This document shows, piece after piece, positions 2,620 through 59,353 of a stretch of DNA of 64,000 nt. Location of the stretch: NCBI GenBank assembly GCA_009103225.1, contig RHPI01002090.1, positions 509,863 through 573,862 of the forward strand, read 5' to 3'. The stretch comes from Chlorokybus atmophyticus. Taxonomy: Eukaryota; Plantae; Mesostigma and Chlorokybus algae. A program made the position numbers and the translations under genes. The notes beneath the pieces were generated by a model that did no database searches, had not been told where the DNA came from, and worked only from the letters and a program-made list of their open reading frames with translations. How positions within the stretch are numbered: the first letter of the stretch is position 1; each line of letters opens with the position of its first letter.

Positions 2620-4930
2620 ATGACGATTCTCGTGCAGGCCTGGAAGTCGCCAGACTCCGGACTCGAGTCCGCCCCTGGAACTTCACGCGCCTGGAACTTT
2701 CAACTTGAGTCCTCGCCTAGAGCCTTCTCGCGGCCAGTTCTATTCGGAGGGCAAGCTGACCGTCTGCCTGGATGTAAGAATATCTTCAATACTTCACACA
2801 GAGAGCTGCTTGGTGGCTCGCTTTCTGCAACAAGGAGTGGATCAGAAGCTGAAGTCCTTGCAGCCTCTTGTAGAAACCATGCAAGACCCATTGCGACTGT
2901 GGGAACAAGCACAAAGGAATGCAGAGGTACGCTCAACAGTCACATGCATTTCCTTGCAAGAGCAATTTTGTTTTTTTGACGCAGTCTATGTGATACATGT
3001 AGCGTGGCTGCAGGCCTTTATTATTCACCCATACCCCACCCCGCAGGCAAGCCGACATTGCGGAAGCAAGAGCAGATAGACAGAGCTAGGCGGCGATATG
3101 TTGTTGCCAATCTCGCTGTGCATGTTGACTGCATGCACCTCCAATGCATGCGTACCTTTGCTTGCTAGGGTGTGCGTGAGTGTGCGAAGTTGCGCGCGCG
3201 TGCCGAACGAAGTAGGCTGGGTTTGAGCACAGGAGCGCGTGGCCATTCGTTCGGCATTCAACTAATAGTGCATCAATCAGCAATGACGCAGTCCATGCAA
3301 TCATTTGCGCATCAACCAGCAATGCCGCGTGACTGTTTAAAGCCACCGCCTGATGACGGTGTGACGCAGTTGACTATTGCAATTGCAGTGTCGCAAGCAT
3401 GCAGCTAACCCACATGTGATTGGTTGACAGCACCACAGTGCACTAGGTCCTGTTGAAGCTCCTATGCAAGCCTGGATTTAATCCCATCAACTAGTCCTTC
3501 ACTCCCAGTTGCTAATGGGCGCGGCGGCAATGCGGCATTAGTTTAACATGCATGTTGGCCTGTTAAATCCCGACATGTCCATTGGGGCAGTGGCGCATGA
3601 TGTGCCAATGGCTCACGAGCTCCGTGATGAGTCTGCATTTAAGGGTGGCGGGGAGAGTGCACCCAATACCACCTTGTCAGCCCCCATGGCTTCCCTGCAG
3701 CCCACGGGCCATTGAGGTACATTGCTGTCCTTTATGCTTGTGCCTTGGTAACAATACGTCAGGCACTGCATAAGCTTATTTTTTTGTCCTTTGCAACATT
3801 GTGAGCCATCTTTTCCTGGGTCCTATATACAGCCCCCCTTGCTGCATGCACAAGTGGTCTCACCTGCCGCACCTGCTCCCCTTGCAGCCAGAGCGCATCC
3901 ACCTTCCGCGGCACCAGTTCTTCATGCAGAACCATCTCCTCCACGACCAGCACCGGTGATTGCAGGGCAACAATCTTTCTTGCCGCAACCGGCGAGACCA
4001 CAGCATAATGCAACAAACAATGTGGCTTCTACAATTACCTTACCCCACCCGCTGCAAGTTGAAGCCGGCAGTCTGCCCCAAGCTCAGGTAGTTTATCAGT
4101 CACTGTCACTCTTGCCGTCGACAGTTGGACACATTATTTAAGTGTTGTATGCGCATGCAGCAAGGGTCACCACCTGCCAGCGAGTCATTAGAGGAGCTAG
4201 CCGCAACCGGCATATGGCCATCAGTCATGCTAGGTGGCCAGCTCGCCTTATGGGACCACTTCAATGCGCCGACGGATGGTAATTGCCTCTATCATTGTGT
4301 GTTTCGCGCCAGGCCATAGCACAAAGTCGCCTAAATGATCACAAGTGCCCCAGCTTGAGCATATTTTGGGCCATGCTGAAAAGCATGGACGACGACGACA
4401 GGGGGGACGCTCTCCGCAAAATCACCGCCAAGGCTGTCGATGCAGGTGGCGAGCAGAATCTTAGACTTTTGCAGAGCCACCAATGCCGCGGGAGAGATGG
4501 CGCTATTACAAACGACCCACTGCCTGCGACCTTATTGGCTGATGTCAATTGCAACATTGACATAGCCATGGCCAAGGTGCGACAATTGTGCGGAGAAAAG
4601 ATGTGTACGTGGAGCACATGCAGATGACCATGTTTGTCAACAAGTGGGCTTGTTGATTGGCTGCGTAACCATTCAGCGCGAGCATGGGGTGGGTGCCACG
4701 GCCCGGCAGCGCAGTTTGGGTTGGAAATAAAGAAGCCCCCAACTCAGTCTTGGTGGTGGGCAACACTGCCCAGATGAGCCATAAGCACACTTTTTGCTCC
4801 TCAAGCCTGCAAGCACCAAACAATGATCGTGGCCTATGCTTGAAGTGCCACTGGAGGTAACAAACCTAATCGGAGAGTGGCGAAATGGCATTGCCAATTC
4901 CCCGCTACTACCGGATGCGATCCAGGGTGC
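2620..4930 (+). pseudogene. Disrupted gene with OTU-like cysteine protease motif, interrupted at 4930 by the DNMT-Gypsy element
   Basis: FNAPTDGNCLYHCV (about 4260-4305) matches the OTU D-G-x-C-L catalytic loop. A frameshift follows immediately. Upstream there is a Pro-rich exon-like segment (3820-4087). Confidence 0.45.
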
Positions 4931-5169
4931 TGTCGTGCCTGTCATGGTCGAGGGCAACCTTGTCTCGGACAGGCTGCGGAGGAGTGCTAGTGCTGCACGC
5001 ATGCTAGTGCCGTGCATTGCATTGGAGTCATGCAAGCAAAAGACAACCCCCCAATCGTGGGCATAGGCTTGAAGATGAGCCTACGCGGTGTTCAGTGCAG
5101 TGGACGAGCCGATGCCGCTTGCCACCTTTGTGTACAGACTGTGTCGTAGTGCACACAGTCAACAAGCCA
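4931..5169 (-). repeat. Split direct repeat A2 (3' terminal repeat of copy 1)
   Basis: Near-identical to 5822-6056, with a few substitutions and one 4-bp indel. In element sense it begins TGGCTTGTTGAC and ends GGCACGACA. Confidence 0.95.
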
Positions 5170-5819
5170 CTACGATAGGTAGTGCTGTAGACACAGTTCT
5201 TTGCATGAGCGGATAGAATGATACACTGTTAAGTGAGGTGAATGAGTGTGCAACACGTGGATACAACACCCTGACTACTGAAACAACACACCACCGACAA
5301 GCTCACAGCAATTGCAGGCACAGCGCACAAGAGCATGCACCGTGTCTCACGCAGTAAGGGAATTCTTGGCAACTGGGGCAGCGTGCTTCCAGTTCAAGTC
5401 GCTTCACAAGCTCTTTAGAAACATAGTCTTTACTTCTTAGTACTCCTAGTACTCACAGTACTCACTTACAGTGTCACCAGCCAGTCTGGTGACGTGACTT
5501 TCTACTTATACATGTCAAATCATGACGGTGCAGTGCCACGCGGGCACTAGGCCAACGGTCACATCGAGGCCTCATGCGATTTCGGAAATCTCCTAAGACT
5601 CGATATAGCACATGTGTTCTTAACAGACTTACAACTGATCAGCTACGCGCGGTCCCTACAGACAGGTCTATAAAGTAGCCCTAGCTACATGCTACATGAG
5701 TGATACAGTAGCTAGCAGTAGGCTGGGGCTCGCGCGGTCTTCATGCTGGTAGCCCGGGCGTGGGGCTGGGTGTAGGCATGCTTGAGAAGAACTGGCATGC
5801 GAGGGTAGATGGCATGACA
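5170..5819 (-). repeat. Split direct repeat B2 of copy 1
   Basis: Near-identical to 15415-16050. In element sense it begins TGTCATGCC and ends CACTACCTATCGTAG. Confidence 0.95.
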
Positions 5820-5830
5820 GCTGTCGTGCC
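5811..5830. other. Internal end-to-end junction (att-like quasi-palindrome GGCATGACA-GC-TGTCGTGCC)
   Basis: The element's two outer termini are abutted with a 2-bp GC spacer. Perfect 10-bp palindromic core GACAGCTGTC at 5816-5825. Confidence 0.9.
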
Positions 5831-6056
5831 TGCCATGGTCGAGGGCAACCTTGTCTCGGACAGGCTGCGGAGGAGTGCTAGTGCTGCACGCTAGTGACGT
5901 GCATTGCATTGGAGTCATGCAAGCAAAAGACAACCCCCCAATCGTGGGCATAGGCTTGAAGATGAGCCTACGCGGTGTTCAGTGCAGTGGACGAGCCGAT
6001 GCCGCTTGCCACCTTTGTGTACAGACTGTGTCGTAGTGCACACAGTCAACAAGCCA
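5822..6056 (-). repeat. Split direct repeat A1 of copy 1
   Basis: Directly follows the G7 polypurine tract in element sense and matches 4931-5169. Confidence 0.95.
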
Positions 6057-6067
6057 CCCCCCCTGAG
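6057..6067 (-). promoter_or_regulatory. Polypurine tract (CTCAGGGGGGG) of copy 1
   Basis: G7 run about 40 nt after the pol stop codon and abutting A1. The identical CTCAG7 occurs in copy 2 at 22581-22591. Confidence 0.8.
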
Positions 6068-6102
6068 ATTCTGGGGTAGCCCTCTGCTCCAGAACTCAGT
6101 TC

Positions 6103-9100
6103 CTACCGACTGTGTGGGGGACCGTTGATGCGGCAGTCATCGCACCAGTACTCCCACAAGGGTACTGCGTCCAGTGGAGGGTCAAGGCAGTAGCAGTGCA
6201 TGCCTTGATTACAGCCGTCGCATAACATCATCAATGGGTCGTCGTCGGCGCTGCCACACTTCTCGCATCGGGTGCTGCGCAGCGGACGCGGGTGCTGGAT
6301 CTTGGTGAAGCCAGCAATGTAGGGGAGATGACAGGGCGCACAGTTGACCATGTTGTCCTTCATGCGCTCGCCTCGTTGTCCTAACAGGTCCAGTACTCTT
6401 GTGGGGTGCACCCTCAATACCTTGTAGACAGCACGCCCGACGGAGGTATCGAGGGTGTCGCGTGTAGACGCCATACGGTAGACGAAGTCTCCTGACTCGA
6501 AGCGGCGCTCCCGCTCCTTGTAGAAACCACTGCGCACACGCTCGTAACGCAGCGTGTCGCGGTGCTGCGCGATGCGCAGGTTGTTGAAGGCCATGGGGAC
6601 TGTGTGTTCGAACAGCGCACTGCGCACTGTCAGATCATACAACATCTCGTCGGGGTTGTCGAGATTGTCCACCACTCTGTCGACCTCCTGCTGTGCGCGG
6701 AAAGGGAGCAATGGCTGCCTTCCGAACAGTAGATAGTATGGGCTGTACTCTCGCAGGGCTGCCTGCTTGGACAGCCGGTAGCCCATTGCTACCCATGGGA
6801 GGTGATCATCCCAGGTATTCTTCTCGTAGGCAAGGACGTACTTGCGCAGTGCCTTCTTGATGGTCTGCACGGTACGCTCGGCGAGGCCGTCGGCCTGCGG
6901 GTGGTCGCGTGAGGTGCGACGGTGGTCGATGAAGCATCTGTCGATAAGCTTGTCGAAGGCTCCTCTGAACTCCGTACCCTGGTCGGTGATGACTTCAGCG
7001 CAGCTGCCGAAACGTCCGAGTACATGGGAGAGGAAAGCCTGGGCTACTCCCTCACTGCTCTTGTCGGGCAGGGGCACCAGCTCCACCCACTTGGAGAAGT
7101 GCTCGATCATGACGAGGATGTAGCGGTTGCCTCGCGCTGAGGGCGCTAGGTCTCCGAGGATGTCCAGTCCCCAGCGGTAGAACAACCCGGAAATGGGCAG
7201 GGGATGCAAGGTGGCATTGCGCGTGTTGAGGCTGGCGCGAACCATGTCACATTGCTGACAGTTGCTGACGAACTCCCGCACCTGTCTGTGCACCCCATAC
7301 CACCAGTACTGGGTCCTGATCAGACTGACCGTGCGCTTAACACCGAAGTGCCCGAGCTCGGTGTGAAGGGAGGAGATGATGCCTTCACGTGCAGCTGGTG
7401 TGGGGACCTCCTGATCTGCATCTTGTATCCGTCGATACAGCCTGTCGTTGGCCCAGCGGTAACGCTGAGTGCGTTGTCGGACGCGGTCCTTCTCGCGTGC
7501 GCTCATGCCTGCTGGAAGTTGTCCAGTCTGAAGCAGTGCGAGGGATGGCTCGTCCAGCCAGATGTCTTGTCGTGTGTCAGTGGGTGCCAGCTCCTCATCA
7601 TCCACCTCAGGGTCGGCAGCGTTTGCTTCTTCTGATAAAGGATCGGTGGTGGTGATGGCGGGCTCGAGAGCGGGCATGTCCCCGTCTGCTGCTGCCTCAG
7701 CGGTCTGAGTCCTGCGTCCCGAGCGTAGCGCAGCGACAGCGAACATGGTGGCCACACCTGAAGGTGCAGCTGTAGGACCCAACTCATGTCGGGCACCTGT
7801 GGCGTCGTTGGTGCTGAGGTGGGGGTTACGGCTGAGGCCATCCGCATCCCGGTTGGCAAGGCCTGCGCGGTGTTCCACCTCGAAGTCGTACTCCTGGAGC
7901 AGCAGCGCCCATCGTGCTAACTTTCCTGTCAAGTGCTGGTTGTTCATTAGCCACTTGAGGGGTTGATGGTCAGTGACCAGTTGGAACTGCCGTCCAAACA
8001 GGAAGGGTCGGAAGAAGGAGATGGCCCACACTGCGGCGAGACACTCCCCTTCGTAGCTGCTGTAGTTGGCCTCAGCACTGTTGTTGCTGCGGCTGGCGTA
8101 CGACACTACGCGCTCCTTTTTGTTGTTGTCATGCTGTACGAGCACGGCCCCCATGCCGAGCTTGCTCCAGTCTGTGTGCAGAATGAACGACCTGGTGTAG
8201 TCAGGGCGTTGCAGAATGGGAGCTGTGGTGAGGCGGAGCTTCAGCTCCTGAAAGGCCTCCTGTTGTGCCTCCTTCCACAAGAACTCGGTGTCCTTCTTCA
8301 GTAGTTCGTTGAGAGGCCTTGCGATCTTGCCAAAGTCTTTGACAAACCGGCGGTAATAGTTGGCAAGGCCGAGAAAGGCCCGCAGCCGCGTGAGGTCTGT
8401 GGGGGCAGGGATAGCCACCAGGGTCTCCACTTTGGCCTGCTGTACGTACACACCATGGGGCACAATCATGTGTCCTAGGTAAGGTACCTTGCGGGTGAAG
8501 AAGGTGCACTTGTCAGGGTGCACCGTCATCCCGACTTCCTTCAGCCTCAGTAGCACCTCTTCGATGTGCTGGAGATGCTCCTCATTGCTGTGACTGAAGA
8601 TGAGGATGTCGTCGATGTAGCAGCGCGCGAAGTCCAACCCCTTGAGGGCTTTGTCCATGACGCGCTGGAACTTGGCCGGAGCGTTCTTCAGTCCGAAGGG
8701 CATGACCTTCCACTGGTACAGCTGCCGGTTTCCCCAGAAGGAAGTCTTGTGCTTGTCCTCCTCCTTGATGGCGATCTGGTTGTACCCTTGGCGCATATCC
8801 AGGATACTAAAGACCGTGCATTCTCCTACATCGTCAAAGATGCCTTCTGTGGTAGGCATTGGATCCCTGTCCTGCTTGGTCTTGTTGTTGAGGGGGCGAT
8901 AGTCGCCACACATGCGCCGGTCTGTCCAGTTGCCTGCTGAATCTTTCTTCAGGGGCATGACGGTCGCGGCCGCAAAGTCCGATGTGGACTCCTCGATCAG
9001 GCCTGCATCTAGCAGCGCCTTGCACCTCTGTTCCACCAAGTCTTCTTCTAGCTTGGAGAGGCGGTACTGTCTTCTGAACACCGGTTCGGTGTCCACTAGT

Positions 9101-9411
9101 TCAATGTCCATCTGGTATGCTGAGCAGATGCCCAGCTCCTTCACACTGAAGCTGAATTGGCTCCTCCACTTGTTGAGGAGAGCCTCGAGTTGCTCTCGAG
9201 TCTGGCCTGTGGCCAGCGGTTCCAATGGCGTGGGACCACGAGGTAGCGTTGGCGACCACTGGAATGTCTTCCACAGTGACTGCTGCCTGCTCCTCCATGT
9301 GGGCGGTCTCGAGGGCGGTGTGTGCTGCTTTGGTCTCTGAAAAGCGAGCAATCCACCCCCCAGCCAGGTGTTCGAGCTCCTGGAAGGACACATGGCGGTC
9401 CTGGAGAGCAA
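6103..9411 (-). CDS. pol: Pol: reverse transcriptase, RNase H, DDE integrase, C-terminal PHD finger
   Basis: RMCGDYRPLN, MPFGLKNAP, YIDD (8608-8619), LHTDWS/SYASR RNase H, HTELGH...CQQC zinc motif, WGLD/TDQG/GLAER DDE triad, C4-H-C3 PHD (6133-6267). The true reading frame starts at about 9222, after a +1 frameshift. Confidence 0.95.
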   Translation of the reverse strand: MLSRTAMCPSRSSNTWLGGGLLAFQRPKQHTPPSRPPTWRSRQQSLWKTFQWSPTLPRGPTPLEPLATGQTREQLEALLNKWRSQFSFSVKELGICSAYQMDIELVDTEPVFRRQYRLSKLEEDLVEQRCKALLDAGLIEESTSDFAAATVMPLKKDSAGNWTDRRMCGDYRPLNNKTKQDRDPMPTTEGIFDDVGECTVFSILDMRQGYNQIAIKEEDKHKTSFWGNRQLYQWKVMPFGLKNAPAKFQRVMDKALKGLDFARCYIDDILIFSHSNEEHLQHIEEVLLRLKEVGMTVHPDKCTFFTRKVPYLGHMIVPHGVYVQQAKVETLVAIPAPTDLTRLRAFLGLANYYRRFVKDFGKIARPLNELLKKDTEFLWKEAQQEAFQELKLRLTTAPILQRPDYTRSFILHTDWSKLGMGAVLVQHDNNKKERVVSYASRSNNSAEANYSSYEGECLAAVWAISFFRPFLFGRQFQLVTDHQPLKWLMNNQHLTGKLARWALLLQEYDFEVEHRAGLANRDADGLSRNPHLSTNDATGARHELGPTAAPSGVATMFAVAALRSGRRTQTAEAAADGDMPALEPAITTTDPLSEEANAADPEVDDEELAPTDTRQDIWLDEPSLALLQTGQLPAGMSAREKDRVRQRTQRYRWANDRLYRRIQDADQEVPTPAAREGIISSLHTELGHFGVKRTVSLIRTQYWWYGVHRQVREFVSNCQQCDMVRASLNTRNATLHPLPISGLFYRWGLDILGDLAPSARGNRYILVMIEHFSKWVELVPLPDKSSEGVAQAFLSHVLGRFGSCAEVITDQGTEFRGAFDKLIDRCFIDHRRTSRDHPQADGLAERTVQTIKKALRKYVLAYEKNTWDDHLPWVAMGYRLSKQAALREYSPYYLLFGRQPLLPFRAQQEVDRVVDNLDNPDEMLYDLTVRSALFEHTVPMAFNNLRIAQHRDTLRYERVRSGFYKERERRFESGDFVYRMASTRDTLDTSVGRAVYKVLRVHPTRVLDLLGQRGERMKDNMVNCAPCHLPYIAGFTKIQHPRPLRSTRCEKCGSADDDPLMMLCDGCNQGMHCYCLDPPLDAVPLWEYWCDDCRINGPPHSR

Positions 9412-9419
9412 AGCACATT

Positions 9420-10370
9420 TCCAAGTACCACACCATGCTGTTCTGATCCATGGCGCGCCCTAACAACTGACATTGTTGACTGGTTGTCAGCGTGGAGCCT
9501 GTGATGCTGCCTGGAAAGAATCCCATAGCACGCTTGCGCTCGCGGGCATTGGGTTCTTCCAGCTGTCCAGTGTTGGAGTCCAACACCATGCCGTCGCCTC
9601 CATTGCGGAACGCGTAGGAGCCTGGATAGGATACAAGCGTGGGTAGTGCGCGGCGCGGCTGACCAGGCTGGTTGCACTGGTAGAAGTGGTGGCGGTCACG
9701 GCGTGTGACCGGCTGCGCTGTGCGTCCAGGGTCCAGGATGTCATCGACGACGAGATTTCGTGGCCGATTGCTGTATAGGTACTCTGCCAGAAATAGGTCT
9801 TCCACAATGGCCAGGTTGGTCCACTTGGCGCGGACGCGGCGTGCACGAGAGCCATGACGTGCGGCGTTGATTTTGAGAGGATGCCCCAGCAAGGAGCATA
9901 CTTGCCGATAGGCCTTGGCGACGTGAAGCCGCTTGTCATCCTCGGAGTGCACATTCTCGATGATGTACCCCAAGGGCCTAGCGATCTGACTGGTCTGTAG
10001 GAGTATGATGACTTACATTAGCTCCCAGAACAGCTGTGAGCGAGGATCAGAGAGCCCTTGGCCTCTGCCTGCCCTGGAGTGCCCTTTACACTCCCATCCT
10101 GCTATCAGCAGGTCAACGTTGCCGACTGCCTGCAGGTGATCCTTGGTAATCCGGCGGATGTCCTGCGGTAGAGCCTTCTGGCTCCCTTGCAGTGCCGACA
10201 GTGGTAGCTGCTGCGGGTAGCGCTGGTGCAGCTGTCGTAAATGATGGCTCAGAGCCTCCTGTGCCTGAGGGTCAGGGTGACAGGAGAGGTACTTGGTGAC
10301 TGTTGTTCCTGTGTTGAGGACAGCCGCAAGCCCACTGCCTATGCCTCCGAACAGCTCCAGCACGGTGATG
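9420..10370 (-). pseudogene. DNMT3-like C5 cytosine methyltransferase domain within the polyprotein (one in-frame stop at 10013-10015)
   Basis: Motif I TVLELFGGIG, motif IV DLLIAGWECKGHS (Cys codon 10088-10090), motif VI IIENV (9950-9958), motif VIII ARRVRAKWTNL, motif X LLGRAMD. ORFs 10013-14527 and 9101-9973 are in the same frame. Confidence 0.88.
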
Positions 10371-13300
10371 CCTTGTTGTCGGCGGAACATGTGGAACTCC
10401 ACAACTCCCGTAGCTATGTGGTACTGCTCCTGCACTGTAGCCTGGTCTTTGTAGACAGGGAAGTGTGCAGTGAGCTGAGGCCTGGTCAGCAACATGTGTG
10501 CTGCTACTTGTGCGCTCCAGCGACGCTCGGATGGCTCCTGAAAGGCCACTTCTTTGGTGACAGCCTCCTGAGACTCATCGTACGGTGTAGGAGAGTCCTC
10601 TTCAGCGTTTGGGCTCGGGCTCGATCTCGTTGCAGTTGTCCTCGGCTGCGTTCGGGCACGAGGCACACGTGAGCTTTTTGTAAGACTGTAGGTGGCTGCT
10701 GCAGCCGATATTCGTTGCAAGCGGTCCTTGGCCACCTGTTCGAGAGGTAGGAATCCCTGCTCCTCTCCATCGTCCTCATCCCAATGCGGTCGAAACCATG
10801 CCTGCTCAGTCCAGCGGTCCATCCCCATGCCGACAGGGAAGTTGCAGTCCTGTCCCAGCAGTAGGTCAAAGGACCCGGCATCGGTGACCACACACCGTTG
10901 TACAATCTCGGTGCTGTGGGAAGGGTTTAGTCCTGTGAGGCGAATGCTCACAGCCTGCTTGGTAAGGCCGAGCACCTTGTCGCGGTTGCCGGTTGCGGTG
11001 TCCAGCTGGTAGGGACAGGGAAGCAGCTCAGCGCTGGTGATGCCGAGATCTCGTGCGAGATAGCGCCCAATGATGACAGGCTGTGCTCCAGTGTCCAGCA
11101 TCACGCGTTTGGGTGCCCGCCCATTGACGGTCACGTGCTTGCCTTGGTTGGCGATCATGGCTGCATTGGCGTTGATGCGCAGCCTCTTGCAGCGATGGAA
11201 CCTCTTGCGTGGAGAGACTGTTGCTTTACTCTCATCTGCGGGGCCTGACCGTAGGGCAGCCAGGGCTCCTCTGCCTGATGGATCTTGTGGGCCTCCTTGT
11301 CCTCGGCTTTGTCCAAACCGTCCTTGTCGCGGTTGCTGGTACACGCGTGGTGGCCTAGGCACAGGAGGTGCTGCTGCAACCTGTCCAAGTGGAGGTGCAG
11401 GAGGGTTGACCCTCTGTGCAGCTGTTGTCATGCCAGGAGGAGTGGCCAGTGGCTGTGGCGGGAACCCTGGAGGACCTGGTGTTTGCGGGACTGCCTCTCG
11501 TGCAGCCTGCTCCTCTGCATAGGTCCATCGCACAGCATGGGCTGCCTCTGTGACTAGTGTACCTTCCCATGTCGCCGTCGCATTGTTGTCCACGTCTATA
11601 TAGCGATGGTTATGAGGCATGGGCTGCAGGTACACTGCGCGTAGGAGCCGCGCCCTCATGTCGTGAGTGACGGTAGGCACCCTGAGGATCCCTGCCATGT
11701 AAGCATCCCATCTGCCGTTGACCACTCCCACTTCCAGCACTGTTATTGCTCGTGTGCGTACAATGAGGCGGGTCTCTGGCTGTTGGACATGCTGCTCGTA
11801 AGCAGCGGCGATGCGCCTGCGCTGACGTCCTGCCTCCACTCCTGGCAAACTCAGTATCGCCTCCAGAGCTCCCTCCAGAGTGTCAGTGGCGGCGGAAGCC
11901 ACTTCATCATAGGCTTGCCGTATGGAGCGAAGGAATGCGTCCACCCACGCTATTCTGGCGCCGAAAGCGAACAACGGGACTGCGGGATGGTTGGTGACCA
12001 GCCACGTCACTAACCGTGCGCGTGCCGCGTTGCCATTGTCTCGCATCCCAAGCATCTGCCGAAGTCCGATGCCTTCTTGCCGATGCAGCATGGTTGCTTG
12101 TCGCACCAGAGCAGTGCGTAGTTGTTGCTCTCCAACCAGTCCTGCTCCATCTCTTTGTGTACACCCTTGTAGTGTAAGGTAGCCCCTCCCTGGCTCCCTT
12201 TGGTCCTCAGGTAGATCCTCCACCAGCGCAGGCAGCAACGGGGCGATCACCCCCCTCGTTTGTTGAGCCAACGCCCTCGCTTGGTCAGAGTTGGTCTCGA
12301 CGAAGAGCGGAGTGGTGCTGGAGGATGGATCAGCAGTTGGTGACTGAGGTATTGGTGCACGTGTAGCTTCAAGAGCTTGTTCACGTGCAGCAATGGCGGC
12401 AGCTTGATCCTGTCGCCAATGATATGCTTGTTCCAGTGCGTGGTAGCGCTGATGAAGACGAGCGGTTGTTGAAGGTCCGAGTGCTTCATCAGTGCCCAAA
12501 GGCAGGTCGGCTGCGTCGGCGATGCGCTGCTGGACGGCGTCTTGGCGGTCCCGATACGTGTCCAACGGGCTGGGTTCAAAAGCGGTGGTTGGCATGCGTG
12601 CAGGCTGGCGCGGGGCGGTCTGCATGTTGTTGTGCAACGCCCAGAACAGCTGCAGAGCCAACTCCAACACTACAGGTGGGCTGTAGCTGATCAAAAACAC
12701 CCTGTCACGCATCGGAGGTGCAGTGCCAGCAAGGATCTCATCTTCTAACTGGTGTTGAGTGAGTGCTGGAAGGGTGTGAACCTCTGGTAGCGGGAAGACG
12801 CGATCATCGCGGGCGACACGCGTGGTGCGCTCCCCCCCCCGACCGAAGGCGATGGTAGTGGGGTCTGCTCCGCGCAGGATGGTTTCCCATGCTCGTTCAG
12901 CTTGCTGACCAGTTGGGACAGCCTGAGTGACGTCGAGAGCGGGCAGAGTGGCTGCGCGCGTCGCTGCAGAGACAGCGGGCTCGACGATGGCCATTGTGGC
13001 AGTTGCGACGGTATCGGTCGGTGGTGCGAGAGTTGTCTTAACGCCTACGGACAGAGGCATTGCTGCAGTGGGAAGTGCACCGCCCACTGGTGCAGATTCG
13101 GTAGTGATGGCGGCTGCTGCCAGTGTGCTCACCAGCGTCGGCGTCACGGTGCCCACCGGTGTACCAGGTTGTGGTGCAACTGGAGTGGGTACCGCTGACG
13201 TTGGTGGAGCCGACGTTGTAGCCGGTGTGGCTGTTGCTACGGAGGCAGCACCACTGGTGGCTTCGGAGGAGGTGCCTGCTGATGTTGTTGCAGCTTCCCC

Positions 13301-15200
13301 TCGTGCTCGTCGTGATGGTTGAACGCGGGACGGAGTGTTCCTGTCTCTCTCGCGTTTTGCAGCCATCAGCGCCCATCGGGCCGTGTAGCAGGCGCGGTAG
13401 TCCTGCTCCTTGTCTTCCTCCAAGCGTGCTATATGTGCCATGAGGGCTGCCATATGGTCATCAGCTGGTGGGTTGGCTGAAGCCTTGGCGGCAACAGCAG
13501 CAGCGCGCGGACGTGTCTCTGGTCCCTTACGCTGAGGAGGTCTGTTCTTCCCCCTGTAGCCTTGCTCTTCCTTGCGAACACTGGCGTTGTTGTTGTTGTT
13601 ACTGCCACCAGCGTTGTTGCTGTTGTGGGCTCCAGTGTTGTTGCTATTGTAGCCACTGAAGTGGTTGCCAGTGTGGCCCCCAGTGTTGTTGCTGTTGTAG
13701 CCACTGAAGTTGTTGCCAGTGTGGCCTCCAGTGTTGTTGCTGTTGTAGCCACTGAAGTTGTTGTGGTTGTAGCTGTTGGCGGGCCTCAACTCTGGGAACT
13801 TGAGCCAGCAAACTGACTCCAAATGACCAGTCTTGTGACAGTGGTCGCAAACCAAAGTTGAGTATTCTTCGGTGCACTCCTTTTGGTAGTGCCCATGCCG
13901 TCCACAGCGATGACACAGCACAGGGGCAGCAAGTGCAGCATGAGCTGACCGTTTCCCTTTGTCGCGTGCTGGTGGAGCGTCCCGGCCACGGTCGCGGCGA
14001 GGAGGCTCAGTTGTCGTGCTGACTACAGGCCGTGCGGCGCTGCGGTTGGTGTCCAGCACTGCCTTCTCATACACCAAGCGCTTGTGGATGGCTTGTGCAG
14101 TCTCGAAGGCTTCTTTGAGGGTGTAGCCAAGGGGCCTGCTGTAGTTCAGAGTCAGGCGTGTGGACTCGCTCAGAGCAGCATCCAACTCATTGACGTATAT
14201 CACTGCAGCAGCCTCCTCACTAACAATCTTGTAGTCAGTGTCCTTCAGCAGACCTTCCAGTCTGGAGTACAAGCGGAGGGGATCCTCATTGGGCTTGCGT
14301 CGGAAGCGTCTCAGCTCCTCAACCTTGCTGGTGGTCTGAGGAGGGAAGGTACGGCGCAGGGCAGCGTACAGGTCCTTGAGTGGAGAATCAGAGATGGCAG
14401 CACCTATGGTGATGGCTGGTGCGCGCAGTGCTACTGACCCGAGGGTGAAAGCGCTGCCTCCTGCTCGAGAGCCAGGTGTTACTGGAGGTAGAGGAGTACC
14501 CCACTCTGCGGCTGCCGCTTGCTGCACAGCTCTTTATTCCTCAATTATAATGGCAAAACGGTCAAGGATGCGGACTCGACGTGTGGCCTCCTTGGACTCA
14601 ACTTCTGCAGGGGTCAAGTTGACAAGTACCAACTCTGGTTCCTCCTCCTCTGCCTGCTTGAGAGCTGCAGCTATGGTCAAGCCTGTTACTGCAATTGAAG
14701 TGGCAGGTGGAACGACACCTGCTGGACGGTGCAGGGATGCAGATGCTATGGTGCTAGCAAGCTCGCCATAGCCGTCTACTCGATGCAGTTCAGCAACGGA
14801 CTTCCAGACATCGTGTGCTTCATGATCAAGATACTGAGCAGCAATGTGGAAAGAGATCTCATCTGACTGATCCGTTGTTCTTCAGTGCTTGCTGCCGCAT
14901 CTTGGAGTGGAACTTGATGATGAACTCATCCAGCGAGGTGGTGCCGGCACGTCCGGAGAAGCGCAGGGATGTGGTTGAACTGGAAGATTCCATCTCGTCG
15001 TCGTCGCTGTCCGATGATAGTGGAGAAGTTGGATGACGAGGAGTAGAGTGGAGCGGGGTGAAGCTGGAGATGGAGCGCGAGCCTCTGCTGCTGCGGTCGA
15101 TGCTTCCGTCACTGGTCCGCTCGTAGGTGAGGTTGGTGGTTGGGCTCCAACTGCCGAGGTCACCCTCGTCTATTGGGGAGAACGGGGTGGGCCTGCTCAT
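10013..15200 (-). CDS. gag: Gag (two CCHC zinc knuckles), long accessory region, aspartic protease and N-terminal half of the DNMT; disrupted near the N-terminus
   Basis: CHRCGRHGHYQKEC and CDHCHKTGHLESVC; MLDTGAQPVIIG protease (about 11087-11095). Upstream ATG at 15200 is joined via a frameshift at about 14862 (…NGSV/DEISFHIAAQYL) and a TAA at 14534-14536. Confidence 0.85.
13600..13775 (-). repeat. 48-bp tandem repeat (about 3 copies) encoding NNFSGYNSNNTGGHTG in gag
   Basis: Direct repeats visible in both DNA and translation. Confidence 0.9.
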
Positions 15201-15389
15201 ACAGCTGGTCCAGAGGTGAAAGGGTAGAGTGCTTGTGCTCGACCGTCTATCCTGATGCTGTTACCACCCAACACACTAGTGCTTGTGCGCACTATGTGAT
15301 GACAATGATAACGAATGCCCAGCGATGTATCCCTGGGTGCAGACTGCACTATCTGATGCAGATTGCAACACACTCACTTGTGCAAAGAG

Positions 15390-15404
15390 GGTGACACTGT
15401 AAGT
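15390..15404 (-). promoter_or_regulatory. Candidate self-priming primer-binding site (ACTTACAGTGTCACC in element sense)
   Basis: Lies just inside repeat B1 and is the perfect 15-nt reverse complement of 15695-15709. Confidence 0.75.
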
Positions 15405-15414
15405 CAACAAGCCA

Positions 15415-16050
15415 CTACGATAGGTAGTGCTGTGGACACAGTTCTTTGCATGAGTGGATAGAATGATACACTGTTAAGTGAGGTGAATGAGTGTGCAACA
15501 CGTGGATACAACACCCTGACTACTGAAACAACACACCACCGTCAAGCTCACAGCAATGGCAGGCACAGCGCACAAGAGCATGCNATAAGGGAATTCTTGG
15601 CAACTGGGGCAGCGTGCTTCCAGTTCAAGTCGCTTCACAAGCTCTTTAGAAACAGAGTCTTTACTTCTTAGTACTCCTAGTACTCACAGTACTCACTTAC
15701 AGTGTCACCAGCCAGTCTGGTGACGTGACTTCCTACTTATACATGTCAAATCATGACTGTGCAGTGCCACGCGGGCACTAGGCCAACGGTCACATCGAGG
15801 CCTCATGCTATTTCGGAAATCTCCTAAGACTCGATATAGCACATGTGTTCTTAACAGACTTACAACTGATCAGCTACGCGCGGTCCCTACAGACAGGTCT
15901 ATAAAGTAGCCCTAGCTACATGCTACATGAGTGATACAGTAGCTAGCAGTAGGCTGGGGCTCGCGCGGTCTTCATGCCGGTAGCCCGGGCATGGGGCTGG
16001 GTGTAGGCCTGCTCGAGAAGGACTGGCATGCGAGGGTAGATGGCATGACA
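15415..16050 (-). repeat. Split direct repeat B1 (5' terminal repeat of copy 1, contains promoter)
   Basis: Matches 5170-5819. Homology extends 12 nt (15403-15414) into the start of repeat A. Confidence 0.95.
15709..15741 (-). promoter_or_regulatory. TATA-like box (TATAAGTA, 15741-15734) and predicted transcription start near 15709
   Basis: TGTATAAGTA is conserved in both families. The GGTGACACTG block lies 32 nt downstream in both (copy 2: 23106 to 23138). Confidence 0.6.
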
Positions 16051-16590
16051 GTGCTGCGCCAACGCCTCAGGCCTTCGTGTGCTAGGCAAGAAGTAGCCGA
16101 CTGTTTTGCACCTCCTGCCTCCCCTCAACCACAGCCACATGCTCGCAATAACAATCCTGCACCCTCCCTTTATGCTGCGGAGACTCACTTGCCACCGAAC
16201 TCTAACCATCCGGAGGCATCTCCATCAAGAAACAGCGGTAGCTCGCCCTCTCCCTCTAAGCTTGCCACATTGATCCCAGCCTGTCTTGTTGGTAAGATTG
16301 ATCGAGGTGTCCTGAAAGCTGCGCTGAAAGACAAAGGCTTCATGCTCGACCTCATGAAGCAACATGAGGTTGTTGAGGAACGGGAGGCAACCAACAAGCG
16401 CAAGGCTGTGGAGCAAAAAGATAACGCGTTACCTCTTCTGAGTGACAATGCCACGGACAGCGCCTGCCAGGTTGTGCAGGTTGACAAAAAAAAAAGGAAG
16501 AAGGTTGTTGGAACAAGGGACGCTGACATGAACAAAAAAGCAAAGGTGAGGCATCATTACAATGTAGTTACAATAAGCACAGCGCCTTGA
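16051..16590 (+). pseudogene. Probable continuation of the sequence interrupted by copy 1 (Pro/Ser-rich, then Lys-rich exon-like segment)
   Basis: An open frame runs across the reconstructed empty site (…YYRMRSRVLRQRLRPS…) and ends at a GTGAG donor-like site. No domain recognised. Confidence 0.3.
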
Positions 16591-18264
16591 AGCCTCACAA
16601 GGGCTGACTGTGTATGCGGAGTAGGCACAAGCGGGTTTACAGCGTCATGTGGCTGCTCGGCATCGTCCAGAAAAACAGCCGATGCGGCACGAGCTGCCTC
16701 AGCTGAAAACACCGACGCGCAGACGCTTTGAGGGGCTGACTCGTAGTGCAAAGGAGTTGATCGCCCTACAATACGACCAAGACGCGCTGCATCACCGCAT
16801 GCGGCATGCCTCGAGGTGGGTGGCGAAAGTATGCAATAAGTAGGAGCAAACGCGGAGAGTGCGGTCTACACAGACCTCTAGGAATTGGCCATAATTGGAA
16901 CCCAAACACAACATGGCCATGCGTAGTACGTTCAACGTTGTTGCCCCTCGTTGTCCTCGATATGGTGGTGGTGTTGCTGCCGCAGCAACCCGGCAATGTG
17001 CAAGAGCTATCCGCGGAGTAGAACTTCGACCTGCTGCAACAGCTGTACTTGTTGATGTCGACTGATGCGGGTCGAGATGTGTGCCACCACTGAATAAACA
17101 TACTGGGTGGCAAGTAAGACCATTTGAGCTATACTTGGCATGCTTTGGCTGGCAGTGGCTGTATGTCATACGGCACGTCGAGCTAATTGTGTGAAAGCTT
17201 GAAGAAGATGGTGATGCGGGCGATTACACGAGTGACGACAGCCATGTCGAGGGCCTGTATGAACGCATGCTGGACGAGACCACCAAGATCAATAGGTGGT
17301 GTATAGCGGCAGATGGGCGTTAGGTGGTTGAGCAGGCAGTGGAGCGTTATGCTGCGCTATTCAAATGGGAGTCGCTGCCTGGTTTCGTCCTCATTGGGAT
17401 GAGGAGGACGGAGAGGTTCAAGGATATCTGCCTCTCGAGTTGGTAGCTCGCACTCGCTCCCAACAAAGGTTAGCTGCAACAACCACCTACAGGTCGTTGT
17501 CGGCAACCACTGACAGGTCAGCTGCGACAGCAACCCACAGGTCGGGCTCGACAACCACTGGCAGGTCATCTGCGGTGGTCACCCACAACGCGGACCAAGA
17601 CTCTCCTATCCCATACGACGAGTCTCAGGAAGATGCCAATGAGGAAGTGGCCCACTAGCAACTAGCGGAACGCCGCTGGCGCGCACAGGTGGTCGCCCAT
17701 CTGCTACTGACCAGACCGCGGCTCACTTCACGGTTCCCTCGCTACAAGGACCAAGCTGCTGTCAAGGAACAACACCAGGCGGCCACTGGAGTAGTGGAGT
17801 TTCACGTATTCCGGCAACAACAAGGCATCACCGTGTTGGAATTATTCGGAGGAATAGGTAGTGGCCTCGCTGCTGTTCTCAACACCGTGTTGACTGTCGC
17901 GCCGGTGACCGGCGCGACAGTCACCAAGTACTTCTACTGTGACCTTGATTCACACGCACAAATTGCCCTGGGCCACCACCTGCGCCACCTACACAAATGC
18001 TACCCGCAGCGACTGCCGCTATCGGCACTGCAAGGCAGTCTAAAGGCACTGCCACATGACATCCGTTCAATCACTGCGGATCACCTCCTAGCGGTGGGCA
18101 ACATCAACCTGCTGATAAGGATGGAAAGGACACTCCAGAGTAGGCGGCCAAGGACTCGCTGATCCTCGCTCACAACTGTTTTGGGAACTGATGCGTGTCA
18201 TCAAAATTTTGCAGAGCAACCAGCTGTCCAGGCCTCCAGGATACATCATTGAGGATGTGCACTC

Positions 18265-18721
18265 TGTTGAAGGTATTACATGGGTGATGCTTGTATCCGG
18301 TCAGCTTGCCCTTCATACAGGAGTCGAGGGTCGAAGGTACTAGCAAGAAGCGCGTGGGCTCCAGACTTAGCAAGACGGTCGAGTCATGACGGACTCCGGA
18401 CCAGGCTGCTTGGTAGAGCCTGGGGAGAAATCGCGTAGCTTTGTGGATACGTAAGCTTAGCAGGCGTGGCTTAGCTTGTTGGAAAGCTCTGGTTGTAAGC
18501 TAGATAGAGTAGCTTACAAAACAGCAATCGGCTGAGTATAGCGCACGCGGTGCTTGCCAATGTAGACGTGTGTAGAGACTGGCGGGGTATAAAGCCCAGA
18601 CTTGTTGCAATGAAGATAAGAGGTCACGATGTAGCATATGTGCGGATGCTATGGCGGCAGTAGCAGTCATGCTCTTGTGTTGATGTTGTTGGCGTGTCAC
18701 TTGCACGTGTGTATGTCAACA
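18265..18721. mobile_element. Solo LTR (TGTTGA...TCAACA, Copia-like termini) inserted in the copy 2 DNMT domain
   Basis: Terminal inverted TGTTGA/TCAACA. Flanked by duplicated (CA)CTC; exact TSD length is ambiguous (3-5 bp). Removing it restores EDVHSEDDK. Confidence 0.8.
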
Positions 18722-21700
18722 CTCCGAGGACGATAAGCGCCATCACGTGGCCAACAGCTTCCAACAGGTGTGTTCCTTACTGGGGCATCCTCTCAATATC
18801 AACGCAGCGCGGCATGGCTCCCGTGCTCATCGTGTCCGCGCCAAGTGGACCAACCTGGCAACAGTCAAAGATCTCTTTGCTGCTGAATATCTGCACATCA
18901 GTCGTCCACGCAATCTGACAGTCGATGCTATCCTGAACCCTGGTGGAACAGCACAACCAGTCACCCGACGCGATCACCACCACTTCTACCAGTGCAACCA
19001 GCCCGGGCAACCACGTCGTGCGCTCCCCACGCTGGTGTCCCACTCAAAATCGTACGCCTTCTGCAACCACGGCGCAGGCATGGTGTTGGATCCCAGCACA
19101 GGCCAGCTGGAGGAACCCAATGCACGTGAGCACGAATGCGCAATGGGATTGACTTCAGGCAGTATGACAGGTTCCACGCTGACCGACAGTCAGCAATGGA
19201 ATGCCAACTGTTGGGACGCGCCATGGATCAGAATAGCATGGTATGGTTATTGAAAACGTGGTTTGCTCTTCAAGACCGCCATGTGTCCTTCCAGGAGCTC
19301 GAACACCTGGCAGGGGGGTGGGCCGATCGCGTGCAAGAGACCAAAACGGCACATACCGCCCTCGAAATCGCCCATATGAAGGAACAGGCAGCAGTCACTG
19401 TGGAGGACATCTCAGTGGTCGCCAATGCCACCTCTTGATCCCATGCCATTGAACCAATGGCTACAGGTCAGATGCGAGAACAACTGGAGGCTCTCCTCAA
19501 CAAGAGGAGAAGTCAGTTCAGTTTCAACGTAAGGGAACTGGGTGTTTGCTCAGTTTACCAGATGGACATCGAGTTGGTGGACACCGAACCGGTGTTTCGA
19601 CGACAATACCGACTCTCCAAATTGGAAGAAGTCTTGGTGGAGCAGAGGTGCAAGGCTCTGCTAGATGCAGGCCTGATTGAGGAGTCCACATCGGACTTTG
19701 CGGCCGCAACCGTCATGCCCCTGAAGAAGGATTCAGCAGGCAACTGGACAGACCGGCGCATGTGCGGCGACTATCGCCCCCTCAACAACAAGACCAAACA
19801 AGACAGGTATCCAATGCCTACCGCAGAGGGTATTGATGATGTAGGAGACTGCACCGTCTTCAGCATCCTGGATATGCGATAAGGGTACAACTAGATCGCC
19901 ATCAAGGAGGAGGACAAGCACAAGACCTCTTTCTGGGGCAACCGGCAGCTGTACGAGTGGAAGGTCATGCCCTTCGGACTGAAGAACGCTCTTGCCAAGT
20001 TTCAGCGCGTCATGGACAAAGCCTTGAAGGGGCTGGACTTCGCGCGATGCTCCATCGACGACATTCTCATCTTCAGTCGCAGTAACGACGAGCACCTGCA
20101 GCACATCGAGGCAGTGCTGGAGAGACTTAAGGGGGTGGGAATGACAGTGCACCCCGACAAGTGCACCTTCTTTACTCGCAAGGTACCCTACCTAGGGCAC
20201 ATGATTGTGCCTTACGGTGTGCACGAACTGCAGGCAAAGGTGGAGGCTTTATCGGCTATCCCTGCTCCCACAGACCTTACGCGTCTGCGTGCCTTTCTGG
20301 GCCTTGCCAATTACTATCGTCGGTTCGTGAAGGACTTCGCAAGGATCGCGCGAATTCTCGACGAACTCCTAAAGAAGGAGGTGGAGTTTGCGTGGAAGGG
20401 GCCACAACAGCAGGCGTTTGAGGAGCTAAAGGGCAGGCTCACCACCGCTCCCATCCTGCAACGGCCTGATTACAACAAGCCCTTCATCCTCCACACCGAC
20501 TGGAGCAAACTTGGGATGGGGGCTGTGCTGGTACAGCACGATGAGAACAAGAAGGAGCGGGTGGTGTCATACGCCAGCCAGAGCAACAACATCGCTGAGG
20601 CCAACTACAGCAGCTACGAGGGGGAGTGCCGACTGCAGTATGGGCTATCTCCTTCTTCAGACCTTTCCTTTTTGGTCGACAATTCCAGCTGATCACGGAT
20701 CATCAGCCACTCAAGTGGTTAATGACCAACAAACATCTGATATGGAGACTTGCTCGCTGGGCCCTATTGCTGCAGGAGTATGACTTCAAGATCAACCACC
20801 GCGCCGGCTTCACCAACCAGGACGCTGATGGCCTCAGTCGCAACCTCACCGCAGTACCAACGATGCAACCGGAGCTCGGCCCCGCAGCAGTAGCTCCCAT
20901 TATGGCGGCCATGTTTGCTGTTGCCGCGTTACGGTCAGGGCGTCAGATCAACACCACCTCAACGACAGAGGAGGTTCCTGTCCTTGAGTCTACCGACCCC
21001 ACAGTGACCACACCCCTAGGGGACGTCCACGCGGTCGACATCGAAGTCGATGACACCGAGCTGGCACCCACCAACACCAGGCAGGACATATGGCTGGACA
21101 AGCCATCACTCTCCTTCCTTCAAAGTGGCCAGCCTCCCTCCAATATGAGTGCACGAGAGAAAGATTGTGTCTGTCAGCGCACCCGCCACTATCGGTGGGC
21201 GGATGACAAAGTGTACCGCCGCGTCCAGGACGAGCACAAGGAGGTGCCAACACCAGCTACACGCAAGGGCATCATCGCTGCCCTCCACACGGAGCTTGGA
21301 CACTTCAGTGTCAAGCGTACCGTCAGCCTGGTAAGGGCGCAATATTGGTGGTATGGGCTGTCCAAACAGGTGCAGGGTTCATTTGTCGATGCCAGCAGTG
21401 TGACATGGTACGCGCCAGCCTCAACACATGCAGCGCCACCTTGCACCCTCTCCCCATCTCTGGGCTGTTCTATTGCTTGGGACTCGACAGTTTGGAAGAC
21501 TTGGCACCCTCGGCGCGGGGCAACCGCTACATCCTGGTCATGATTGAGCACTTCTCCAAATGGGTGGAGCTGGTGCCATTACCCGACAAGAGCAGCAGGG
21601 GGGTGTTTCAAGCTTTCCTCTCCCATGTCCTCAGCCGGTTCGGCAGCTGCACTGAGGTCATCACCAACCAGGGCACTGAGTTCAGAGGGGAGTTCGGAAC

Positions 21701-22591
21701 CCTGTTGGACAGATGCTACATCGATCATTGCCATACTTCACGTGACCACCCTCAAGCCGACGGTCTCGCCGAGCGGACGGTGCAGACTATCAATAAGGCA
21801 CTCCGCAAGTACGTGCTGGACTATGAGAAGACCATCTGGGACGACCACCTTCCGTGGGTGGCTCTTGGCTACCGTTTGTCGAAGTAGGCGGCGCTGCGCG
21901 AGTACAGCCCATACTACTTGCTGTTCGGGCGTCTGCCGTTGCTTCCCTTTCGTGCACAGCAGGAAGTAGACCGTGTGGTGGACAACCTCGACGATCCCGA
22001 CTGGATGCACAATAACATCACCACACGTGCCACGCTGTTCGAGCACACCGTCCCGATGGCCTTCCACAACCTGCGCATCGCACAGCACCGTGACACTCTG
22101 CGCTACGAGCGCGTGCGGAGCGGCTTCTACAAGGAGCGCCAACGGCGGTTTTTAGCAGGTGATTTTGCCTACCGCATGGCAGCCACCAAGAACACGCTCG
22201 ACACCTCCGTGGGCCGCACCGCCTACAAGGTACTCAAGGTGTACCCCACAGAGTGCTGGACCTTCTTGGTCAGAATGGCGAGAGGTTGAAAGACAACATG
22301 GTGAACTGCGCGCCATGTCACCTCCCTTACATAGCAGGCTTCGCGCGCATCCAGCAACCTCGCCCCGCCCGCAGCACACGCTGTAAACGCTGCGGCAGCG
22401 CCGGCGATGACGCACTCATGATGCTCTGCGATGGCTGTAACAAGGTCCTGCATTGCTATTGTCTGGAGCCCGCATTGGACGCAATACCCATGGAGGAGTA
22501 CTGGTGCGACGATTGCCGCATCAACGGTCCTCCTCACCTGCGTTAGCAACTGAGCTCTGGAGCTGGAACCTCCCCAGAAGCTCAGGGGGGG

Positions 22592-22827
22592 TGGCTTGTT
22601 GACTGTGTGTCCTACAGCAAAGCATGTACACTAAGTAAGACACCGCCTCCACATGTCCGTGTTCAGCAACAGTGGAGTGGCTCCACCAAGCATTCCTCGC
22701 CATACAAGCTGGGTTATCTTTTACTTTTGCCACAGGTTATAAGATGTTGCAGCAGCAGGATAAGCACGCATGACTTTCCCTGCAGCGGCCCGATACAGTG
22801 TGACCCTCGACTTCCCCCGACCCGACA
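22592..22827 (+). repeat. Split direct repeat A1 of copy 2
   Basis: Follows CTCAG7, starts TGGCTTGTTGAC, ends CGACA, and is repeated at 23421-23720. Confidence 0.93.
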
Positions 22828-22829
22828 GC

Positions 22830-23420
22830 TGTCATGCCTGGTGCCCACACATACCAGCCTTCATCGGGCATGTCTACATCAAAACCGTCGCCCGACCTAC
22901 CGACATACCAACGCGCGCGCGTCCCTGACCAGTAGCTATGTCATGTCTTCAGGGTAGCTCACGACCAAAGCCCACATAGGCACCGCGCGTAGCTGTTCAG
23001 TTGTGAGTTCAGTGATAAGTAAATTTTATATCGAGTGACAACCGCTGTGGAAATAGCCTCGACATGACCATTAGCTTATGTTTTGAACAGTCATGATTTG
23101 ACTTGTATAAGTAGTCACAGTGTTCACCGGATCAGCTGGTGACACTGTGAGTGAGAAAGCTAAGAGCTTGTGAAACGACTTGAACTACGAACACGCCATC
23201 TCGGTTACCAAGAACCCCCTCACTGTGTGAGAGCTTGTGCATGCTCGTGCGTGCATCGTGCTTGTCATCGCCGTGGGCCTGGTGTGCCTAGTTGCAGTGT
23301 GCTTGTTGGCATCAGTCAGGGCATAATACCCACGTGTTGCTTGCTCATTCACCTCACTTAACAGTGTAACACATTTTTCGCTCATGCAAAGAACTGTGTA
23401 AACAGCACTACCTATAGTAG
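22830..23420 (+). repeat. Repeat B2 of copy 2
   Basis: Starts TGTCATGCC after the GC spacer. Shares conserved blocks with copy 1 B (ACCGCGCGTAGCTG, GTCATGATTTGAC, TGTATAAGTA, GCTGGTGACACTGT, GACTTGAACT) and ends CAGCACTACCTATAGTAG. Confidence 0.88.
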
Positions 23421-23720
23421 TGGCTTGTTGATTGTGTGTCCTACAGCACAGCATGTACACTAAGTAAGATACCGCCTCCACATGTCCGTGTTCAGCAACA
23501 GTGGAGCGGCTCCACCAAGCATTCCTCGCCATACAAGCTGGGTTATCTTTTACTTTTGCCACAGCAACAGTGGAGCGGCTCCACCAAGCATTCCTCGCCA
23601 TACAAGCTGGGTTATCTTTTACTTCTGCCACAGGATATAAGATGTTGCAGCAGCAGGACAAGCACGCATGACTTTCCCTGCAGCGGCCCGAGACAGTGTG
23701 ACCCTCGACTTCCCGCGACA
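23421..23720 (+). repeat. Split direct repeat A2 of copy 2, with an internal 69-bp tandem duplication (23493-23630)
   Basis: Matches 22592-22827 plus a 69-bp duplication. Followed by flank GCAT. Confidence 0.93.
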
Positions 23721-30855: not shown

Positions 30856-31725
30856 CTTCTGATCAAGCTCAATCATCGTGCAACCTATGTTATATGCACA
30901 CCGTAAAGTACACATTCCTTCATTTACAGCATGAGATCCTCTTCGCGCTACATATATGCTGGTACTGAACCGTTCCATCACTTGTGGTGACGGCCACTGG
31001 TTGACCTCATTATGTGCTGCATGTGTTGGCAACTAGCACTGCCTGAGTTGGCTCACGAAGTCAGAAAGTGTTCGTGCTGCCAACTAGGCAGCATGGTTAT
31101 GGTACAACACTACAGCTCGTCAAGGTGGTCAGATTTCCTTCCAGAATGGAATTGCAGTCACCGTTGCAAACCGCTATATTTCTTGCCTGAGTACATGGTA
31201 GCGTTCAACAGGGTCATGGTGTCCTTGGACATGTTCAAGTTGTCAGCTACATTGACCCAATCAACCTTCAATTGTTGTGCAAAGATGCGGATGTTGCTGT
31301 GTCTGCTTGATTCTGGCCCCTCTACTCCACCCGTGGGGCCAGTACCCACCACGACCAACATGGACGATTGTTGGGATGGCAGGTGTGAACGTGTCTACGT
31401 AGCGGCGTACATCAAATGCAGGACATGCGCATGCACAACGTGTAGTTCAGTCAGCACGTAGCAACACATGCAAGGTGTCGTACAAATGACAATTTGTTGA
31501 CCACTGGGCTACTACTAGCACGCTAATCTACTGCCTCTACCCGGTTAGACATGCAGCAGTCAATATGCAGTTGGTAATCACCTGCCCACATGGGCGTTGG
31601 TCAGTTGTTGGCGCTTTCGGTCACACAGATAGCATGCAAATTGGCGACCAGGACTCCCCCTCCCTCTCTCCCTGGCTCCGCCTCTTTCCTCGCCCTCTGC
31701 TAGCGACGCAGCAGGGTTTGCTGGG

Positions 31726-40364: not shown

Positions 40365-50247
<9,883 letters not shown>

Positions 50248-59344: not shown

Positions 59345-59353
59345 CCCGCACCG

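Follow-up and report, generated by a model that had tools for sequence, protein, structure and literature searches.

The 64,000-nt stretch of Chlorokybus atmophyticus DNA analyzed in this study (contig RHPI01002090.1, hereafter the window) contains on its minus strand an ~11-kb Ty3/Gypsy retrotransposon that carries a DNA methyltransferase, and its end repeats follow the order B...A-B-A instead of forming two identical long terminal repeats (LTRs). The whole is best explained, with a probability of roughly 0.55, by a degenerate copy of a Gypsy-DNMT3 element in which the repeat unit of reverse transcription and the unit of integration are out of register. As determined by repeat finding, self-BLAST, and direct reading, the order in element sense is B1, a 9.4-kb internal region, a G-run, A1, the dinucleotide GC, B2, and A2. 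The features of the element, in window positions, are listed below; TSD stands for target site duplication.

16051..16054, minus strand: TSD on the 5' side, GCAC in element sense
15415..16050, minus strand: repeat B1, 636 nt, starts TGTCATGCC
15741-15736, minus strand: TATAAG in B1
15709-15695, minus strand: putative self-primer or transcript start in B1
15390..15414, minus strand: leader
15414-15402, minus strand: 13-nt copy of the start of A, in the leader
15404-15390, minus strand: putative primer-binding site in the leader, 15 nt exactly complementary to 15709-15695
6103..14527, minus strand: gag-pol
6057..6063, minus strand: G-run resembling a polypurine tract, abuts A1
5822..6056, minus strand: repeat A1, 235 nt, ends GACA
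5820..5821, minus strand: 2-nt spacer GC between A1 and B2, forms the palindrome GACAGCTGTC (CA-NN-TG)
5170..5819, minus strand: repeat B2, 650 nt
4931..5169, minus strand: repeat A2, 239 nt, ends GACA
4927..4930, minus strand: TSD on the 3' side, GCAC in element sense

In element sense B begins with TGTC and A ends with GACA; the termini of the element are thus TG...CA, and the tetranucleotide GCAC is present at both flanks. Identity is 97.5% between A1 and A2 and 95.7% between B1 and B2, which differ by a single 14-nt indel, B1 also containing one N; since the repeats are 240 and 640 nt long and match at more than 95% identity, a chance origin can be excluded. The A1-GC-B2 joint forms a 10-nt palindrome. 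The split-repeat order, all coordinates, the TG...CA ends, and the 4-bp TSD had been proposed in an earlier note on this DNA, and were reproduced base for base. Absent from that note was the recurrence of the first 13 nt of A directly 3' of B1. Base calls in the assembly are imperfect, as shown by four isolated N bases at window positions 15584, 42685, 52035, and 63081, the first of which lies inside B1 beside the 14-nt indel relative to B2.

The gag-pol region encodes a zinc knuckle, an aspartic protease (PR), a DNMT3-like methyltransferase, reverse transcriptase (RT), RNase H, an integrase (IN) with H2C2 and rve domains, and a PHD finger. According to the Pfam search, the upstream reading frame contains the zinc knuckle, the protease, and the start of the C5 DNA methyltransferase, and the downstream frame contains RT, RNase H, Integrase_H2C2 (1e-15), rve (5e-8), and the C-terminal PHD finger. 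The prediction of a DDE integrase is therefore borne out by both integrase domains, and the predicted lack of a recombinase holds as well, as the domain search detected no member of the tyrosine recombinase family in 15 open reading frames (ORFs) on both strands. The closest solved structure is Ty3 Gag-Pol (7q5b, E 2e-98), together with the Ty3 RT (4ol8, E 2e-75); the integrase part matches the foamy-virus integrase at 1e-20, and the PHD finger matches the fingers of UHRF1 and ATXR5. The methyltransferase is a partial PF00145 domain with weak matches to DNMT3A/B/C (E about 1e-3), and it is interrupted in the window copy. Compared to uninterrupted relatives with a single polyprotein, the gag-pol of the window element is broken by one in-frame stop and one frame change, and judging from these lesions the element is a moderately old, dead copy; divergence between its repeats amounts to 2.5-4%. 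The DNMT3 domain and the PHD finger are cargo, with a probable action on chromatin or methylation. In the gag part, a 24-nt tandem repeat of about 8 units (window 13588-13787) encodes a low-complexity stretch.

Assignment of the element to the streptophyte Gypsy-DNMT3/PHD lineage of Ty3/Gypsy is almost certain. As in other Ty3/Gypsy elements (Metaviridae), the order in Pol is PR-RT-RNase H-IN, the closest RT is of the Ty3 type, the DDE integrase has an H2C2 zinc domain, and TG...CA termini are combined with a target duplication of the usual 4-5 bp (here GCAC). The expected identical LTR at each end is missing, as B stands alone at the 5' end, whereas A-GC-B-A makes up the 3' end. With the DIRS order (PAT, Ngaro) the element shares split direct repeats, but it has no tyrosine recombinase ORF and does possess a TSD. 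Two features of KnitGypsy-Dnmt3 are present, namely a DNMT3-like C5 methyltransferase inside the polyprotein and DIRS-like repeats combined with Gypsy domains. The protein search revealed homologues in Klebsormidium, Coleochaete, Closterium, Chara, and liverworts; the K. nitens proteins match the window element with E values of 1e-193 to 1e-236 and 38-45% identity. The top match, with 52% identity, is a Coleochaete scutata transcript, and thus at least one relative is transcribed. In three intact-looking relatives (L004, L089, and L090; related loci are numbered with the prefix L), the gag-PR-DNMT and RT-IN-PHD ORFs share one frame with a stop between them, which may represent programmed read-through. 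The 1039-aa pol is the same in L089 as in L090, and this family therefore looks young.

The split-repeat layout is not limited to the first element. The window contains a second copy, which stands tail to head with the first:

17377..23720, plus strand: second copy, 5'-truncated, 73-82% nucleotide identity to the first
22592-22827, plus strand: A'1, preceded by its own G-run
22830-23420, plus strand: B', after a GC spacer
23421-23720, plus strand: A'2, with a 69-nt internal duplication

The coding region of this copy is broken by at least four frame changes and three stops. Splitting of the second copy by insertion of the first element was considered and rejected: homology to the gag-PR-DNMT frame of the first copy starts at 17377, and no match exists left of 4931. 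A pattern scan of metagenome contigs yielded 80 related loci, in which A-like and B-like segments were mapped and each locus was compared with itself. The order A-B-A follows pol in 24 of these metagenome loci, and 11 of the 24 also have B1 about 9 kb upstream (10 distinct loci, L049 and L050 being one). About 14 loci have a single A despite a downstream flank, i.e. the order B-int-A without B2-A2, where int is the internal region (for example L006, L012, L033, L037, L044, L074, and L075). No mapped locus has A between B1 and pol, and no relative examined has ordinary B+A repeats at both ends.

The same layout is found in K. nitens DF237474 (L085), where the order B1-int-G-run-A1-GC-B2-A2 is accompanied by a 4-bp duplication, in a second K. 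nitens contig (L086), in the chromosome-level assembly of Calypogeia fissa (L087; repeats 99-100% identical), and in Marchantia (L088). Of the outcomes that the earlier note had named as contrary evidence, none was encountered: the chromosome-level Calypogeia assembly shows the layout, and neither ordinary B+A LTRs nor a tyrosine recombinase was found in the copies or ORFs searched. Repeats were not found after pol in the K. nitens contig of P0049 (L001), and the layout counts exclude L002, where the contig ends, and Closterium L003, which is too repeat-rich to read. The split-repeat layout is thus common to the whole family and is not a one-off.

The boundaries are conserved along with the order. 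Among the relatives examined, B starts with TGTCATG and A ends with ACGACA, or near variants of these; the G-run abuts A1 in all of them, and the spacer between A1 and B2 is 2 nt, often GC, in nearly all copies. Seven copies with the full layout (the window element, L020, L024, L035, L080, L085, and L087) are flanked by an exact 4-bp duplication, and four older copies by one matching at three of four positions. Exact 4-bp duplications also flank the single-A copies L044 and L074. A link between the spacer and the first two bases of the duplication was rejected, because the two coincide in two of nine copies (the window element and L035), a frequency that chance can explain.

The leader that follows B1 in the window contains a 15-nt exact complement to a segment of B, a length reached in none of 300 shuffles. 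The exact complement is 15 nt long in K. nitens (L085), 14 nt in L090, 13 nt in L031, 12 nt in L017, 11 nt each in L008, L035, and Calypogeia (L087), and 10 nt in L080. The paired sequences are wholly different among lineages, in six unrelated versions, and complementarity has thus survived substitutions in both partners. The complementary segment of B lies about 31 nt after a TATA box; its start falls within 30-34 nt of the box in eight of 12 elements. Taken together, the complement and the TATA spacing put the start of transcription within B and the primer site immediately behind it. Self-priming of the Tf1 type is therefore likely, the start of the transcript being predicted from the TATA spacing alone. 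A primer site of the tRNA type was considered and rejected: TGG does stand at the head of the 13 nt that follow B1, but these nucleotides would call for an implausible acceptor stem, ARAGORN predicted no tRNA gene in the window, and TGG does not directly follow B1 in any of the relatives examined. Quite probably, the sites of priming and the ends recognized by the integrase differ in position by the length of A.

The joint between B2 and A2 was surveyed in ten copies of the AT-rich family that carry their own B1. The joint is blunt in six of them and off by a few nucleotides in four; copies without B1 add +1 changes and one larger deletion. The spacer, the G-run/A1 boundary, and the B1/leader boundary show no length change in copies of this family. 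Variation of the joint against the fixed length of the other boundaries suggests that it is formed anew in each cycle and is not copied from RNA. In the lineage of the window element, the joint holds a single copy of the 13 nt common to the leader and the start of A, which suggests homology-assisted joining there.

These observations, i.e. the G-run directly before A, the complement next to B1 to the post-TATA segment of B, and copies extending from the TG of B to the CA of A with 4-bp duplications, can be combined into the following replication route. Transcription would begin within B, and the 5'-terminal 11-15 nt of the RNA would fold back onto the site after B1 and prime the minus strand, as in Tf1, with the G-run priming the plus strand. 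Since the primer site lies directly after B and plus-strand priming occurs before A, ordinary reverse transcription would produce a linear complementary DNA (cDNA) with A-NN-B at both ends. The integrase ends TGTC...GACA would then sit inside the A-NN-B unit, abutted as the CA-NN-TG palindrome. The termini of the cDNA, the end of B and the start of A, would become joined, and the DDE integrase would open the joined molecule at the palindrome of the repeat beside the primer-binding site. The opened molecule, B-int-A-NN-B-A, would be inserted with a 4-bp stagger. Because no other arrangement would retain both the promoter-bearing B upstream and a full A-NN-B downstream, the permuted form alone could template the next round. 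Cleavage of palindromic LTR-LTR junctions by retroviral integrase, a precedent for the opening step, is reported in the available text of two papers (PMC1180852, PMC1905944).

We consider this joined-ends route, opened at the palindrome, to have nearly even odds. More tentatively, the lineage may possess a distinct replication design for an LTR retrotransposon, with self-primed A-NN-B repeats, an obligatory internal palindromic substrate for the integrase, integration via joined cDNA termini (a circle or an equivalent), and a permuted provirus, conserved from Klebsormidium to liverworts. Several points weigh against the out-of-register reading and its route. The leader/B complement is not above chance in 4 of 12 elements, some of the heterogeneity at the B2/A2 joint could stem from slippage in the short AT repeat into which it falls, and the 13-nt overlap at the joint of the window lineage has no counterpart in other lineages. 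The route is a reconstruction from genomic copies. A symmetric two-unit circle should also give B-A-NN-B-int-A copies, which are found in none of the 20 loci with an upstream B; the route thus needs an unexplained preference for one junction, although the junction beside the primer site could become double-stranded earlier and so create the asymmetry. The single-A copies would fit either direct integration, as a dead end, or later recombination between A1 and A2, and do not discriminate.

Other explanations have to account for the same layout. That it reflects a single rearrangement or an assembly error in an ordinary element with B+A LTRs can practically be dismissed: the layout is unusual and the assembly contains single N bases, one of them within B1, but the layout recurs in the diverged second copy of the window, in the 24 metagenome loci, and in four named or long-read assemblies, the duplications of relatives lie at the same boundaries, and none of these relatives has B+A at both ends. 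The bracketing of A-NN-B by the G-run and the primer site, like that of a normal LTR, would agree with an ordinary element whose true LTR is A-NN-B and whose permuted appearance results from loss of the 5' A and gain of a third, partial LTR by unequal recombination. We regard this as highly improbable, given that A is present upstream of B1 in 0 of 20 loci, that the TG of B and the CA of A mark the exact positions of the duplications, that the end of B lacks CA, and that the same loss and gain would be needed independently in every copy.

The repeat order equals the A1-int-B1-A2-B2 of PAT and Ngaro (PMC8969392), and both termini are present in the internal joint, as expected for a DIRS/PAT-type element or for a DIRS-like route in which single-stranded cDNA is closed on an A1-B2 splint and the B2/A2 joint is copied from RNA. 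Such an origin has a slim chance of being correct, since no ORF searched contains a recombinase domain, the RT is closest to that of Ty3, a DDE integrase is present, and 4-bp duplications occur, whereas DIRS elements have none. Moreover, the signature of a primer site next to B1 and the G-run that precedes A suit ordinary LTR-type priming, and a variable length of the B2/A2 joint is unexpected if the joint is templated. The latter observation also bears on a variant of the permuted design in which the extra A is supplied by the reverse transcriptase: in the window lineage, the plus strand would re-anneal through the 13-nt terminal redundancy, A would be recopied, and the integrase would trim the product. 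Both window copies do share 13 nt between the leader and the start of A, which would give matching cDNA ends, and the window joint carries a single copy of them. This variant is nonetheless unlikely, though not far-fetched, as the redundancy is missing from Klebsormidium, Calypogeia, and the AT-rich family, whose joints are blunt or nearly so, and a polymerase-templated joint should keep a constant length.

The rest of the window consists mostly of transposon sequence, with protein matches that never exceed 52% identity, and no clear host gene was recognized across it. A different Ty3/Gypsy pol, with RT, RNase H, Integrase_H2C2, and SH3_Tf2-1 in several adjacent ORFs, occupies about 55780-60620 on the minus strand. 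It lies in the last quarter of the window, which is richer in AT than the rest (GC content 43-45%, vs 51-60% elsewhere). Several ORFs of 170-570 aa at 28400-33100 and 42100-50050 have no Pfam match.

Split direct repeats serve as a diagnostic of DIRS elements and two identical LTRs as a diagnostic of integrase-encoding elements; the Gypsy-DNMT3 lineage, an old one with a wide distribution among streptophyte algae and liverworts, breaks both rules. Because of this, programs that detect LTRs as a pair of identical repeats will probably overlook it or misplace its boundaries. The DNMT3 and PHD cargo bears on the joint evolution of transposons and host methylation systems. Should the proposed route be correct, it would tie retroelement integration to the abutted-end circle junctions of bacterial insertion sequences, and a junction that is a mere by-product in retroviruses would gain a natural role.

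The combination of Gypsy domains with split repeats is itself already described for Klebsormidium relatives. The available text of de Mendoza et al. 2018 (PMC5890265) reports K. nitens Gypsy elements with a DNMT3 domain in Pol, and the legend to its Fig. 4c assigns to KnitGypsy-Dnmt3 the repeat structure of DIRS elements with Gypsy domains; a 2026 preprint names the group streptophyte Gypsy-DNMT3. The suggestion that this combination belongs to no described class was therefore wrong, given the same DNMT3-like insert and the homology to K. nitens elements, and it is the comparison with Klebsormidium proposed in the earlier note itself that settles the matter. The available text of PMC5890265 gives neither a duplication nor a mechanism, and we found no discussion of a TSD or a mechanism for Gypsy-DNMT3 elements in the literature searched. 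The self-priming signature, the offset between the units of reverse transcription and integration, and the variable B2/A2 joint may go beyond that literature.

Among known systems, KnitGypsy-Dnmt3 is similar in having a Gypsy gag-pol, a DNMT3-like domain upstream of RT, and DIRS-like split repeats; the window element differs in its protein (38-45% identity), its host, the 13 nt by which leader and A overlap at their starts, and its broken state. Canonical Ty3/Gypsy elements share the domain order, the TG...CA ends, the 4-bp duplication, and the polypurine run before the repeat, but in the window element the end repeats are not identical units and the priming sites appear offset from the integrase ends by the length of A. 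With PAT and Ngaro the likeness is restricted to the repeat order X1-internal-Y1-X2-Y2 and the internal joint with both termini: those elements have a tyrosine recombinase, no TSD, and an RT of the DIRS clade, whereas the window element has a DDE integrase, a 4-bp TSD, and a Ty3-like RT. As in Tf1 and sushi, a site after the 5' repeat is complementary to the 5' end predicted for the transcript, and there is likewise no tRNA-type site; Tf1, however, has ordinary LTRs, and the similarity concerns the sequence signature of priming only, with primer cleavage being putative. Self-priming has also been predicted for the plant Tcn1 and TAR clades (Neumann et al. 2019, PMC6317226). The junctions of retroviral 2-LTR circles resemble the A1-GC-B2 joint in that two ends recognized by a DDE enzyme are abutted in a CA-NN-TG palindrome with a short spacer. 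Abutted ends are also characteristic of the circles of insertion sequences of the IS3 and IS30 families. In contrast to the retroviral junction, which is a by-product, the junction of the window element belongs to it permanently, is inherited with it, and, in the proposed route, would be an obligatory substrate.

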